Below are positions 18,810 through 23,609 of a stretch of 64,000 bases of DNA, piece by piece; the stretch's first letter is position 1; each line of letters starts with the position of its first letter. The notes beneath the pieces are model-generated. The model saw only the letters and a list, made by a program, of their open reading frames with translations. It had not been told where the DNA came from and did no database searches. The DNA lies in NCBI RefSeq assembly GCF_000143415.4, contig NW_003314331.1:666114-730113 (forward strand). Direction: 5' to 3'. The position numbers and the translations under genes are program-made. Source of the DNA: Selaginella moellendorffii (Eukaryota; Plantae; Lycopodiophyta).

Positions 18810-19767
18810 TCATTCATTCATTCGTATACTGTTTAGCAGAGAAGCATACTCAAACTCATCCAGTTCTCCTTTGCTCTTCAATTCTTCAATCAATGCTTCA
18901 TCTGCAGCTGCATACCGGTTATACCCTGGAGGCATTTCTTCCTTGGATTTGTATAACTCGAAGCCTAGGCCTGCGTTGAGAAATCCATCGAGTCCCTGAA
19001 AAGCTTCCCAGATTTGAGATGCAAGAGGGCGGGGTGGCTCAGGCACAATGAAGATTCCCAAGGCTGGATGTTTTTTGCAGATCCGTTTGAGGTTTTCGTA
19101 TTCAATCCGTTGGACGCAGAAACGAGGATGGTATTGCGGGAAGTCTGCTACCTGAACGATATAACCCACCTGAAAACGTACACAAATAAACATACAAAGA
19201 AACAGAGAATAGAAACTGATACAAACTCCAAGATGAATTCTCTTCATTGGTCCAGTGTAAGTCCTCTCTGCCCAGTCCTCATTTCGCAGGGGATCTCTTG
19301 AACAGTGATAAGTATCGTGTCCCTTCGCTAGGCAGAGGTAGCATTTCTTTTGTTCATGAGCAAAAGGATCCACTCCAGGCTAAAACAAAAAAAAAACAAA
19401 AAACAAAGAGTCAAAAATTCAATAAGTGAGCTTTCTTACCCCCTTGCAGTGTCTTTCCCAATGACCTCTCTGCTTACATCTTCTGCATTGGTCGACGAGT
19501 AATCCCTCCTTCTCACCGGGACGATGAGTTCCTATGATCTCGTACCTGTTACAAACAAAAGCAAGTAAACATCAAACCATATAACCTTGCTTACCTTGCT
19601 TGCATACGATCGTAATCGTCCTCGATTGCAAAAATGTCCACCTCCTTCGGCTTTTCCTTTGTGAACTTCCTGTTGCTGCTGCCGCCGTCGTAAGCCTTCT
19701 TGTGCTGCCCGTTGCTGCTGTTGCCGTCATAAGCCTTCTTGTACTGCCCGTTGCTGTAAGCCTTCAT
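18810..19767 (-). CDS. Two-zinc-knuckle protein (copy 2)
   Basis: Same exon structure as 6428-7374 with a few substitutions; frames remain open. Confidence 0.6.
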
Positions 19768-20222
19768 TTTCGGAAAGAAAATGTCCAGAACCAACAGGGA
19801 GCTATAAGAGTCCGTTCTTGTCCTGCGGTATTGAAAACCAGCTTTAATTCATCATGTGTATCGAGGATCCCTTACCTGGACAATACTATCAAAGATAGCC
19901 TTGAGGAGAGCTTTGGAACGCGATGTAGGTACCAGATCGGCAAGAATTCCTGTAGCAGCCTGCTGCATTGAAAAGATACGATGGAAGACCGTATCACGGA
20001 GGGCCTTGAGGAGCGATGTAGCTCCGTGCAACACGATCACAGGCGACGGCAATCGGAGACGAGATTCTGGCGATTACTCACTCTTAGCTAATGTGGACCG
20101 CCAAACCCTAAACTTTATACCAAGTATATTTTTAAGTATCGACAGTGTAAAATCAAACGAACGGCCACTGCTGTTCCCGCTGCTGTGGAACGAAAACTAG
20201 TTAAGTCAGTTATATGTTATTC

Positions 20223-22567
20223 TTATAAAGGTGGTGGATGTCTAATGTTACTGGCTTGCTCTAGAGCGTATGCTATCTCGATAAGAACACCCTCGGAGCC
20301 TTTGTTTCCCAGGAAGCAAATCCCAAATGGAAAACCGGTGGGAGGAGCGTAGCCTGCGGGGATCGAAATGGCAGGATATCCGGCGATGGCTGCTGTGAGC
20401 GAGATTGCCGACACCGCAGTTGGAGCCACCAGCGCGTGGAGATCGTGCGTCTGGAGCAAGTAATCGATCCCATTCTCCGTGAGGAACTTGTTCCTTGCGA
20501 GAGCATCTTTGTATGCTTGCGACTGTTGATCCTCTTGCCGAGCTTGAGCTTCGATGAATACATCTTGGCCAAAACGATCTAGTTTCTGCACAGTTTTGTG
20601 TAAATTTTAGAGTTTTTTCAGCGGTTCCTACCTCGTCTGTGTGTTCCTCGTTGAATCTAATCACGTCCTCGAGGCTGCGAACTTTGCTTGTGGTGAGCTC
20701 GGACAGATACTTCTGAAGATCATGCTTGAAATCGATTTGTAGCACCAGATCCTCGTTCTTTGTGCTCACGATCTCTTCAGCGTTAGGCAGCTCCAGATCC
20801 TTGACAATCACTGCTCCTCTAGCTCTGTCCCAAAGAAAGAAAAGAAAAAAAGAGCAAAGATTTCAAAGCATGAACGAGGATACTTAAAACCCAGTCACTC
20901 ACATTGCCAGAGAAAAGAGTTTCTCCATATCACCAGAAATCTCGTCGATGACAAAGTATTTTCCAGCAAGCACGCCCAGCCTCTTCCCGCGAAGACCATC
21001 CCTTTTCAGAAACTGCTTGTATCCTCCTCTGGGAATGTATGCAGCCGCGGCAGTAGTAGCACTGTCGAGATCATCTACACCAACGATCACGTCAAGAACT
21101 TCGACCGCATCTTTCATGGTTCTGCAAATCGGCCTGCGATAATCCAAGCGTTAAAAGCTGTAAGCTTTCGTGATCATAACTTCTTGATTACCCGACTGAG
21201 TCCATATTATGCGAGAGCGGGATCACTCCCGCTCGGCTCGTGAGTCCAACCGTGGGCTTGATCCCGACGACTGCAGCAAAACTGGCCGGGTTGATTATCG
21301 ATCCATCGGTCTCCGTCCCGAGAGTGACTGTAGCCATGTTTGCAGAAACTCCGACTGCGGAGCCGCTGCTGGAACCGAAAGTTGTTTGGACTGGATCATA
21401 TGGATTCTGTTTTCAACAACAATCGCAAGATCAGAAATGAAAAAAAGAATCAGCTTATACATACCATGGTTTGTCCACCACGGGGACTCCACCCATGCGG
21501 AGCTTCTGTAGATCTGAAATACATCCACTCGCTAAGGTTGGCTTTGCCGAAGATGATCGCACCGGCGTCACGTAACTTCTTCACAACGCCAGCGTCTCTT
21601 GGAACAATGGAATCGACCAGAGCCAGAGATCCAGCCGTGGTCTGGAGCTTGTCCTTCGTGGCGATATTGTCCTTGAGAAGAATTGGAATGCCGCGCAAGC
21701 CTACGACAGAACAGAAAAAAAACACACAGAAAAATATCACAAAATTATATAAACTGAAATGCAAACCTTTGCAACTCTCGGCTCCGTGTTGTTTCCTGTA
21801 AGTATCGGCTTCATTGGCGAGCTCCAATGCGTCGGGAGACACCTCGATCACGGCTTTGAGCTGGGGATTCAGCCGCGTGATCCGAGCAATGTAAAACTCC
21901 ACCAGCTGTTTTGATGTTAGAGTTCCTGCTTTCAGTGCTTCTTGAATGTCTTCCACAGTGGCTTCTTCGATTGGGAATTGTGGAGTTGGAACAATACCGT
22001 CGGGCTCAAAGCTTCCAACCATTGTAAGCAGCACACGATCTTCACCATCTTTTCCTTGGATCTTTTGCAAGTCACACTTGAAGTCACCTTCTAGCATGCT
22101 GTACATTTGCGGAAGCCATCAAATATCAATCACACACTTCTTTGAAGCGAGCACTTACACTCTGGTCCCAAACTCCTCCTGGATAATGGCCCTCAAAGTT
22201 TCAGCATAATGCACAATAACCTCTCGAAACCTTCGGAAAAACAGAGATAAGAAACAGAAAGGAAAATGTTTTCGGAAGTGAAAACCATGTACCTGTAGAT
22301 TGTTGGGTCTTGAATGATCCCAGGAGCCAGTGAGCGAAATGGGATGACTTCCATGGCCCGAATGAGCTCGTCAGAGAGTGTAGGAACCGCCATTTGCAAA
22401 CGCTGGGCTTGCGCTCTACAAAGCGGTGCCTGGCGGTGAAACAATTGAGCAGCATATAAATTCGTGACACCCATCTCTTGGGCAATCTGGTTGAAGCTCT
22501 TCCCTGCATTTTGCTTGGCTTCCAGAAGCTGCAGCACAAGCTCCTCTTTTCTCACATCTGTAGCCAT
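20223..22567 (-). CDS. Cyanase-like domain fused in frame to an amidase-signature enzyme (8 exons, 638 aa predicted)
   Basis: Exons 22567-22293, 22230-22159, 22098-21767, 21700-21465, 21406-21192, 21133-20903, 20824-20632 and 20585-20223, all GT-AG and phase-consistent (1917 nt). The N-terminus aligns by eye to plant cyanase (GKSFNQIA.E.G.TNLY.AQL..RQA; DPTIYRF.E; EEFG; DF.C...KI.G.DG.DRV). The amidase motifs LLKDNI, GKANLSEW, GSSSGSA, GTETDGSI and GIKPTVG are intact. Confidence 0.88.
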
Positions 22568-22738
22568 AGCCCCTAAGTATTGAGTGTCTAGGGCTCGTCA
22601 AGTTATCCAGGGAGTAGTATATAAGATAGTTTAGGACAAATACCCTGGTTAAAAACTTTAATCATAAAAGGCTAAATTACAAACTACTAAATTAATAAAG
22701 GGTAAAGGACTTATGTCTTGAAAAATGACAGACAGAGC

Positions 22739-23609
22739 TTAATCCTCAGCTTCGGTAAACTGAGCTTCTATGTAGATCGACTCAGTGTTCTCTTCTCCTT
22801 TCTCAATCATGGAAACCTTAAATTGAGCTAAATGCTCATCACCTGCAGCAAAACAGTATATGCATAAGATAAAAATTACTATTTAGTATCATCATGTACC
22901 AAATGTGATTGAGCTGCCTGGGGGAACCGGAGTGACAGCTCCAGGTCTCACTCTCCTGTTATTAACGAAGGTCCCGTTGGTACTGTCTAAATCAGTTACC
23001 ATAAGCATCGAATCTCTCTTCTCAAGCCGGGCATGTAATCCAGAAACTAAAACAAAATTGAGACGAAGAAATTACACAATATGAGAAACAATTACCTGTT
23101 CCAACTGGAATTACAATGTCTGCCTTGTCAGCCACACGTCCCACCGTGGCAGCATCCTATTAGCAAGATCAAACTCTAGATTATCAATCTAAAGTAGACC
23201 TCATCAAATAAAAAAAGTAGAGAGGTCATGGTTTTTAACTTACAGTAGAGAGCTCAAATGCACTTGGCAGAGGAACTTCTTCGCCTATGTGGCGGCAATC
23301 ACCATCTCCTACACCCATTAAAATCTCATCAAAGAAAAGAAGAAGAAAGTCATGAGAAACACTGCTATTCTTCACACCTATGGGCTCGAGAAGCCATTTC
23401 GTGTCCACAGCAGCGGCAGCCAAAAGCCTCGCAAAACTGGAGCTTCGTTGCCAAATCCGCGTTTCCCTAGAATGTGTTTGCACCAAATTTACATTCAATC
23501 CAATCGCTCCACCTCCACAGTGATTCCAAAGCGCGCGCGAGGAAGGCCACGACGAGGGCGCCACTGGCGGCCACGCCCGTGCATTTAGCTGCTGCATCAA
23601 AGCCGGCAT
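22739..23609 (-). CDS. FHA-domain protein with probable plastid transit peptide
   Basis: Spliced WLLEPIG/DGDCRHIG, TVGRVADKADIVIP, VSGLHARLE, VTDLDSTNGTF and GDEHLA, typical of the plant small FHA protein family. Confidence 0.85.

Follow-up and report, generated by a model that had tools for sequence, protein, structure and literature searches.

A cyanase-like domain fused in frame to a Pam-type amidase in Selaginella moellendorffii: a transcribed gene fusion with a probable pseudoenzyme module

Introduction

Cyanases (cyanate hydratases, EC 4.2.1.104; CynS and plant CYN; PF21291 and PF02560; structures 1dw9, 6tv0, and 6xgt) decompose cyanate in a bicarbonate-dependent reaction. They have a two-domain fold and are homodecamers, built as pentamers of intertwined dimers. 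The decamer is needed to form the active site, which is located where adjacent dimers meet (PMC7801690). No substrate has been established for the plant amidases of the At4g34880 family (PMC8393822), whose closest solved relative is Pam, a peptide amidase of Stenotrophomonas maltophilia (1m21/1m22 and 5ac3). Here we describe a gene of the lycophyte Selaginella moellendorffii in which sequences of these two kinds are joined in a single reading frame. The gene lies on the minus strand at 22567-20223 of a 64,000-nucleotide (nt) stretch of contig NW_003314331.1 (positions 666,114 to 730,113; hereafter, the window, from whose first letter all positions are counted). The fused mRNA is real, and the explanation that we consider probable is a fusion of the Selaginella lineage encoding a cytosolic Pam-type amidase with a structurally kept, catalytically dead N-terminal cyanase scaffold.

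Comparison with the described systems reveals the following features of the locus: (i) the amidase half resembles Pam and the At4g34880 family in its end-to-end alignment, triad motifs, and 50-59% identity to the plant members, whereas the hydrophobic presequence of that family is replaced by a cyanase-like module of 156 residues; (ii) the N-terminal half shares with cyanases the two-domain fold, the intron positions and phases of CYN genes, and the catalytic Arg and Glu, but it has Leu in place of the catalytic Ser, a rewritten active-site loop, no C-terminal tail, and a C-terminus joined to an enzyme of 480 residues; and (iii) allophanate hydrolase, biuret hydrolase, and urethanases share the amidase-signature superfamily and the triad with the fusion, but only their cores match and they are not its closest clade. 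A protein of 371 residues with an N-terminal SPRY domain (P0007) likewise has its cyanase domain within a longer polypeptide; unlike in the fusion, that domain is C-terminal, it keeps the Ser, and its partner is not an enzyme.

Gene structure and expression

The gene model was rebuilt by script from the region 19800-23200. It comprises eight exons with a coding sequence of 1917 nt, translated to 638 residues, and all seven introns (46-78 nt) have GT-AG borders and consistent phases (Table 1). The product, whose exon number and length agree with the initial annotation of the sequence, is letter-identical to the RefSeq protein XP_002985952.2 (P0270), titled 'probable amidase At4g34880' (Selaginella moellendorffii). 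Exon 3, as that annotation had also stated, is a single open frame that runs with neither a stop nor an intron from the C-terminal strands of the cyanase, ending ..TMVGSFEPDGIVPTPQ, to the amidase N-terminus, beginning FPIEEAT..; the passage from the final cyanase strands into FPIEEAT reads ..VGSFEPDGIVPTPQ. In the full-length protein, Pfam recognizes Cyanate_lyase (PF02560) at residues 84-146, with 65 bits against a cut-off of 25, and Amidase (PF01425) at residues 181-577, with 260 bits. The cyanase matches are below threshold if the search is made exon by exon, because the domain is divided among three exons.

Of the words sampled from the locus, 55-68% are present in public S. moellendorffii RNA runs. 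Assembled contigs of four RNA runs from four different studies were mapped to 19700-23300. Three of the runs yielded single contigs (2028, 1941, and 1962 nt) and the fourth yielded two abutting contigs, with a combined span of 20142-22584; the contig ends fall at 20142-20206 on the side of the 3' untranslated region (UTR) and at 22529-22584 on the 5' side. Six of the seven introns are present in the four runs as contig joints exactly at the modelled boundaries, and intron 6 (20825-20902), which is within a skipped repeat region, is visible only as a gap between contig pieces. The contigs thus span both the cyanase and the amidase exons, as had been anticipated for a genuine fusion.

In run X1, the contig stops at 22584 and is followed by Illumina adapter; the transcript likely begins about 17 nt before the ATG, with the transcription start site near 22584. 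The upstream FHA-domain gene is represented by separate contigs ending at approximately 22641-22652, which shows that the fusion mRNA does not arise by read-through from this gene. The two genes are on the same strand, and only about 57-68 nt separate the 3' end of the FHA gene (22641-22652) from the start of the fusion mRNA (22584), so that a promoter serving the fusion gene has to overlap the 3' UTR of the FHA gene.

The original annotation by the Joint Genome Institute split each allele of the gene into a 'partial' cyanase piece (141 or 146 residues) and an amidase starting from Met142 (486 or 497 residues). At the locus considered here these models are EFJ13130.1 (146 residues, partial) and EFJ13129.1 (497 residues, starting at Met142), and UniProt has only the split models. 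Such a division would fit a gene with two products, in which an internal promoter or initiation at Met142 yields the amidase and the cyanase reading frame is a leader or encodes a separate truncated protein; in addition, a 5' UTR of about 17 nt could weaken initiation at the first AUG. But in each of the four runs the assembled transcript extends over exons 1-8, the cyanase reading frame has no stop of its own, and the assembled mRNA contains 10 AUGs upstream of Met142, of which five are in frame and several have a good context. At the first AUG itself, positions -3 and +4 are both G. Taken against these observations, two products appear quite improbable.

The second allele, encoding a protein of 638 residues (P0001, XP_002984896.2), is located on another scaffold between the same neighbours, with the FHA gene on its upstream side and a zf-CCHC gene on its downstream side, and differs from the gene described here at 22 of 2345 aligned positions (0.9%). 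We read this locus as the second haplotype carrying the same fusion, the S. moellendorffii assembly being one that contains two haplotypes. The identical structure on two diverged haplotype scaffolds, together with the transcript contigs of four studies, leaves practically no room for an artefact of assembly or annotation such as a chimeric join.

Two observations concern the differences between the alleles. Four of them fall within 21 nt at 20941-20961 (K435E, D440K, and E441D) in a gene that is otherwise 99% identical; this cluster suggests a single complex event or a short tract of conversion rather than independent point mutations. Alternative splicing was considered for a 46-nt joint at 20588/20635 (runs X5 and X8; 20586-20635) and rejected, since the joint is the alignment equivalent of the haplotype difference GAG>CAG (E518Q) at 20634.

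The cyanase-like domain

The homology of the N-terminal half to cyanases is apparent at the levels of both sequence and fold. Residues 8-148 match residues 11-151 of 155 of the cyanase structure 6tv0 (phmmer E 1.5e-18). The identity of this half to the stand-alone S. moellendorffii cyanase (SmCYN) is 50%, and to fern and other cyanases 47-56%, compared with 59-65% between those cyanases and SmCYN. For the monomer of residues 1-160, the AlphaFold2 model has a mean predicted local distance difference test score (pLDDT) of 87 and a predicted template modelling score of 0.77, with pLDDT below 50 only at residues 153-160, where the linker forms the end of the construct. The best 18 fold matches of this model in PDB are all cyanases, with template modelling scores of 0.70-0.74. 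In the phylogenetic tree, the fusion has a long stem branch (0.86, compared with 0.45 for SmCYN), and its position among cyanases, those of ferns and Selaginella included, was left unresolved.

The catalytic residues are only partly retained. Of the trio known from Escherichia coli (Arg96, Glu99, and Ser122), the fusion keeps the first two as Arg92 and Glu95, and the position of the Ser is occupied by Leu118 in both haplotypes. The surrounding loop, GDGIMSA(I) in cyanases, has become GTRVMLE(G) in the haplotype described here and GNRVMLEG in the second one. To place these substitutions, 150 representatives and the named cyanases were aligned to the cyanase profile, and 42 sequences covered the motif. 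The Ser is present in all 38 genuine cyanases among them, and Leu is found in the two fusion alleles only; the two remaining sequences have Ile and look like artefacts of intron read-through.

The consequences of comparable changes have been described for two cyanases. In AtCYN, the substitution S117A decreases the activity from 2.286 to 0.040 U/mg, and the decamer is no longer formed (PMC3070753). In the fungal enzyme Tl-Cyn, even the substitution S127T abolishes activity and A128V costs 77% of it (PMC7801690). Because the Ser is replaced by Leu and the next Ala by Glu in the fusion, and Ser mutants are inactive, cyanase activity of the fusion protein is, by analogy, very unlikely.

These data bear on the bifunctional salvage enzyme for cyanate and carbamoyl compounds that the initial annotation had proposed, in which the cyanase domain would be a working cyanate hydratase, or a related carbamate or cyanate enzyme, channelling to or from the amidase. 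The complete cyanase fold and the residues Arg92 and Glu95 are kept, and a functional link is conceivable, as both enzymes release ammonia. But, besides the replaced Ser and Ala, the invariant GDG has become GTR (GNR in the other haplotype), published mutants at the Ser are inactive, the active site requires a decamer of the kind that S117A disrupts in AtCYN, and an intact stand-alone CYN is present in the same genome. We consider such an enzyme very improbable and do not retain this proposal.

Outside the loop, the domain is well conserved. Among 33 genuine cyanases, 30 alignment columns are at least 90% conserved; the fusion has the consensus residue in 25 of these, compared with 28-30 in control cyanases. 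Four of its five deviations (D114T, G115R, S118L, and A119E) are clustered in the active-site loop at residues 114-119. Substitutions in the fusion are concentrated in the variable columns (Mann-Whitney p = 1.8e-7). A pseudoenzyme domain retained for a non-catalytic role would be expected to look like this, with its scaffold intact and its catalytic loop rewritten.

Polymorphism was collected from the two haplotypes and from RNA-derived variants. The cyanase part has 8 non-synonymous and 1 synonymous changes in 158 codons; the amidase part has 9 non-synonymous changes, located in 7 codons, and 3 synonymous ones in 480 codons. Per codon, the cyanase part thus has about three times the amino-acid polymorphism of the amidase part, with counts of non-synonymous and synonymous changes too small to separate constraint from drift. 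Seven of the eight polymorphic cyanase residues are at variable columns (conservation 0.21-0.70), and the remaining one, position 114, belongs to the loop that was already rewritten.

A denser polymorphism, the stem branch of 0.86, the weak Pfam scores of the single exons, and the occurrence of the fusion in one species only would all agree with a module under no selection, i.e., a relic of the rearrangement whose frame is kept open only for the sake of the upstream AUG of the amidase, the loss of the signal peptide being its sole effect. We regard this as unlikely: at a divergence of about 50%, the domain has kept five sixths of the conserved columns, its changes avoid these columns, current polymorphism is likewise confined to variable positions and to the rewritten loop, and the fold is confidently predicted.

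The amidase domain

Residues 156-636 align from end to end with Pam (5ac3 and 1m21; E about 1e-101), and the motifs LLKDNI, GSSSGS, and GTETDGSI are identical in the two proteins. By alignment and spacing, the Lys/cis-Ser/Ser triad of the fusion consists of Lys236, Ser317 (the cis-Ser), and Ser341 (the nucleophile), equivalent to Lys123, Ser202, and Ser226 of Pam in the numbering that reportedly comes from Labahn et al. 2002. The fusion thus belongs to the Pam-like clade with the At4g34880 family. A kinship to allophanate, biuret, and carbamate hydrolases, suggested in the initial annotation, is not supported, as the structures of allophanate hydrolase, biuret hydrolase, and urethanase match the fusion over a part of its length with E values of 1e-20 to 1e-27 only.

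A tree of 25 homologs from plants places the amidase half as the sister of SELMODRAFT_172412 (P0179), a non-fused S. moellendorffii paralog, with the support values 99/98, and the Diphasiastrum and seed-plant sequences are outside this pair. The branch lengths are 0.77 for the fusion and 0.61 for the paralog; the amidase half is accordingly not unusually fast-evolving. As a side observation, many angiosperm matches of approximately 900-1070 residues (P0151-P0166) contain two At4g34880-type amidase units and are probably tandem duplicates merged by automatic annotation.

The N-termini of the aligned non-fused relatives have a short hydrophobic presequence directly before F.IEEAT. A heuristic hydropathy scan, as distinct from SignalP, detected it in 60 of 73 non-fused relatives, with a median length of 30 residues; it is therefore typical of the clade without strictly defining it. 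The fusion lacks such a presequence, the peak 10-residue hydropathy of its first 35 residues being 0.72, and begins with the cyanase module instead. The non-fused paralog SELMODRAFT_172412 has a signal peptide, and the module occupies exactly that position, as the initial annotation had noted for related plant amidases in general. Relocation of the amidase to the cytosol, which the initial annotation had suggested, may reasonably be inferred, because the cyanase module sits where the relatives carry the signal-like presequence.

Origin of the fused gene

The stand-alone SmCYN gene (L002:4001-4647, scaffold GL377705.1) consists of four exons of 278, 72, 109, and 21 nt with GT-AG borders and encodes 159 residues, including YRLNEA...GDGIMSAVGF with the catalytic Arg, Glu, and Ser. 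Introns 1 and 2 are common to SmCYN and the fusion at identical codon positions and phases, and exon 2 is 72 nt long in both genes. In RefSeq, the stand-alone cyanase is represented by XP_024522171.1 (132 residues, 'cyanate hydratase-like'), a model that omits exon 2, that is, 24 codons including the catalytic Glu and the GDG motif. This exon is intact in the genome (72 nt, GT-AG borders), and the four-exon model of 159 residues restores a complete cyanase.

Cyanase homology can be traced in the fusion as far as ..SFEPDGIV, the counterpart of ..KFLPHIVQ with which CYN exon 3 ends. This places the breakpoint at the boundary of CYN exon 3 and intron 3. This result modifies two earlier statements. 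The domain encoded by the first three exons had been called complete, which is correct up to the end of CYN exon 3, but the short tail encoded by CYN exon 4 is missing. The linker had been described as short, and it is, but the proposed one was too long: since SFEPDGIV is still homologous to the cyanase end, the real linker is just about four residues, PTPQ, apparently the only stretch of unclear origin.

As the fusion amidase is the sister of SELMODRAFT_172412 and other sequences are outside this pair, the duplication that produced the two amidases is confined to the Selaginella lineage. We found no trace of an ancestral tandem pair, as there is no amidase beside the stand-alone CYN and no cyanase beside the paralogous amidase.

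Distribution and database records

In a search with exon 1 among 1.84 billion representative proteins, one protein of 638 residues was found at 97% identity, the product of the second allele (P0001), which carries the same RefSeq name as its counterpart; the remaining matches, at 56% identity or less, are ordinary cyanases or fragments corresponding to cyanase exon 1. Other searches agree with this result. P0001 was the sole match among proteins of 350-1116 residues that have words in common with the cyanase region, and it was also the only one with PF02560 among the best 120 full-length relatives. The best matches of the cyanase part among proteins of 80-255 residues are ordinary fern cyanases with at most 59% identity, and nothing was found between 60% and 97%. 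A feature search of ESM Atlas gave sub-threshold amidase fragments only.

Both domains were thus found together, in the collections searched, only in the two S. moellendorffii alleles, with no specific search aimed at distant bacterial and fungal fusions. These searches depend on shared words or on clustering at 50%, and on the Selaginella species present in the collections; the confinement of the fusion to S. moellendorffii is accordingly an absence of evidence only, within the reach of these collections. Besides the fusion, several long proteins with a cyanase domain were found, such as P0007, and none of them has an amidase domain. Two others, P0016 (307 residues) and P0061 (349 residues), have a cyanase domain with unexplained C-terminal extensions; all three may be mergers of gene models.

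The initial annotation knew of no described fusion of this kind. In the full-text literature, we likewise found no paper describing a cyanase-amidase fusion, and a proteome paper on S. bryopteris mentions only the omega-amidase NIT2. The sequence itself is not new, as the fused protein has a RefSeq entry for which both Pfam domains are precomputed, although its name does not reveal the cyanase part.

Table 1. Parts of the fused gene, with coordinates in the window, listed in the direction of transcription
Feature	Coordinates	Strand	Evidence
5' UTR, to contig reach	22568..22584	-	transcript contigs
Exon 1, residues 1-91 + 2 nt; cyanase N-terminal helical domain and start of catalytic domain; ends ..DPTIY(R)	22293..22567	-	
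Exon 2, 72 nt; helix H6, Arg92 (22294, 22293, 22230), Glu95 (22223-22221), loop start G113-T114-R115 replacing G-D-G	22159..22230	-	
Exon 3, first part; cyanase-like end, Leu118 (22094-22092) at the catalytic Ser position, two beta strands	21978..22098	-	
Exon 3, first part, continued; degenerate C-terminal motif VGSFEPDGIV; linker PTPQ 21989-21978		-	
Exon 3, remainder; amidase homology from F157 (FPIEEAT)	21767..21977	-	
Exon 4; amidase signature domain, catalytic Lys236 (21674-21672) in LLKDNI	21465..21700	-	
Exon 5; GSSSGS with cis-Ser Ser317 (21373-21371, by spacing to Pam), nucleophile Ser341 (21301-21299) in TETDGSI	21192..21406	-	
Exon 6; variable amidase middle, four haplotype differences clustered at 20941-20961	20903..21133	-	
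Exon 7; amidase	20632..20824	-	
Exon 8; amidase C-terminus and stop TAA 20225-20223	20223..20585	-	
3' UTR, to contig reach	20142..20222	-	transcript contigs

Proposed origin and function of the fusion protein

The results described above suggest the following scenario. The first three exons of a duplicated CYN gene would have been joined in frame to a duplicated amidase gene of the At4g34880 type, with the end of CYN exon 3 connected to the inside of the first amidase exon and the amidase signal peptide deleted in the process. The single mRNA, translated from the first AUG, is predicted to yield a protein of 638 residues and about 70 kDa. Its amidase half, with the triad kept and a rate of change like that of the non-fused paralog, is presumably an active amide hydrolase. 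Its cyanase half, with the fold and the Arg-Glu pair kept and the loop changed from GDGIMSA to GTRVMLE, would not be expected to hydrate cyanate, judging from the published mutants; detoxification of cyanate would be left to the intact stand-alone CYN elsewhere in the genome.

Two effects of the pseudo-cyanase module are envisaged. It would replace the secretion signal and so keep the amidase in the cytosol, and it would provide a structured N-terminal scaffold, in which the intertwined cyanase dimer is probably still formed. A decamer of the fusion protein seems unlikely; its formation is doubtful by analogy with S117A of AtCYN. The role of the module is probably dimerising or scaffolding, and possibly ligand-binding. 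This would agree with the second proposal of the initial annotation, an amidase that uses the cyanase fold for oligomerisation or sensing.

The last possibility can be extended to a 'Rosetta-stone' reading, in which the Arg/Glu pocket of the pseudo-cyanase binds cyanate, bicarbonate, or a carbamoyl compound and the module acts as a ligand sensor or delivers the substrate to the amidase. We consider this improbable. If true, the substrates of the plant At4g34880 amidases would have to be sought among carbamoylated or ureido amides, and the module would be the first cyanase-derived regulatory pseudoenzyme.

Several points weigh against a catalytically dead scaffold that is retained for its structure. 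The conservation of the invariant columns could partly predate the fusion or the loss of activity, and the denser polymorphism together with the long stem branch could fit a module that is drifting at present. The retained Arg92 and Glu95 may leave room for an altered chemistry or a residual binding of anions. The transcript contigs are assemblies, with which a minor isoform with an internal start may be compatible. The support is at the level of mRNA and sequence, and the translation into 638 residues, the location, and the oligomeric state of the protein are predicted. Finally, no second species with the fusion was found, and its long-term retention is therefore not demonstrable.

Significance

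The fusion combines members of two well-known families; it is a modest curiosity of evolution, found in one species as far as seen and with no phenotype attached. At the level of databases, it calls for a correction, since UniProt has split models and the RefSeq name mentions the amidase only. If a Pam-type amidase with a retained, catalytically dead cyanase scaffold is the correct interpretation, the gene would be a clean natural case of the conversion of a cyanase to a pseudoenzyme, with the fold kept and only the active-site loop rewritten, and of its recruitment by gene fusion. It would then offer a tractable system in which a cyanase scaffold can be followed without catalysis and a signal peptide has been exchanged for a folded domain, and it may give a hint at the substrate of these amidases.

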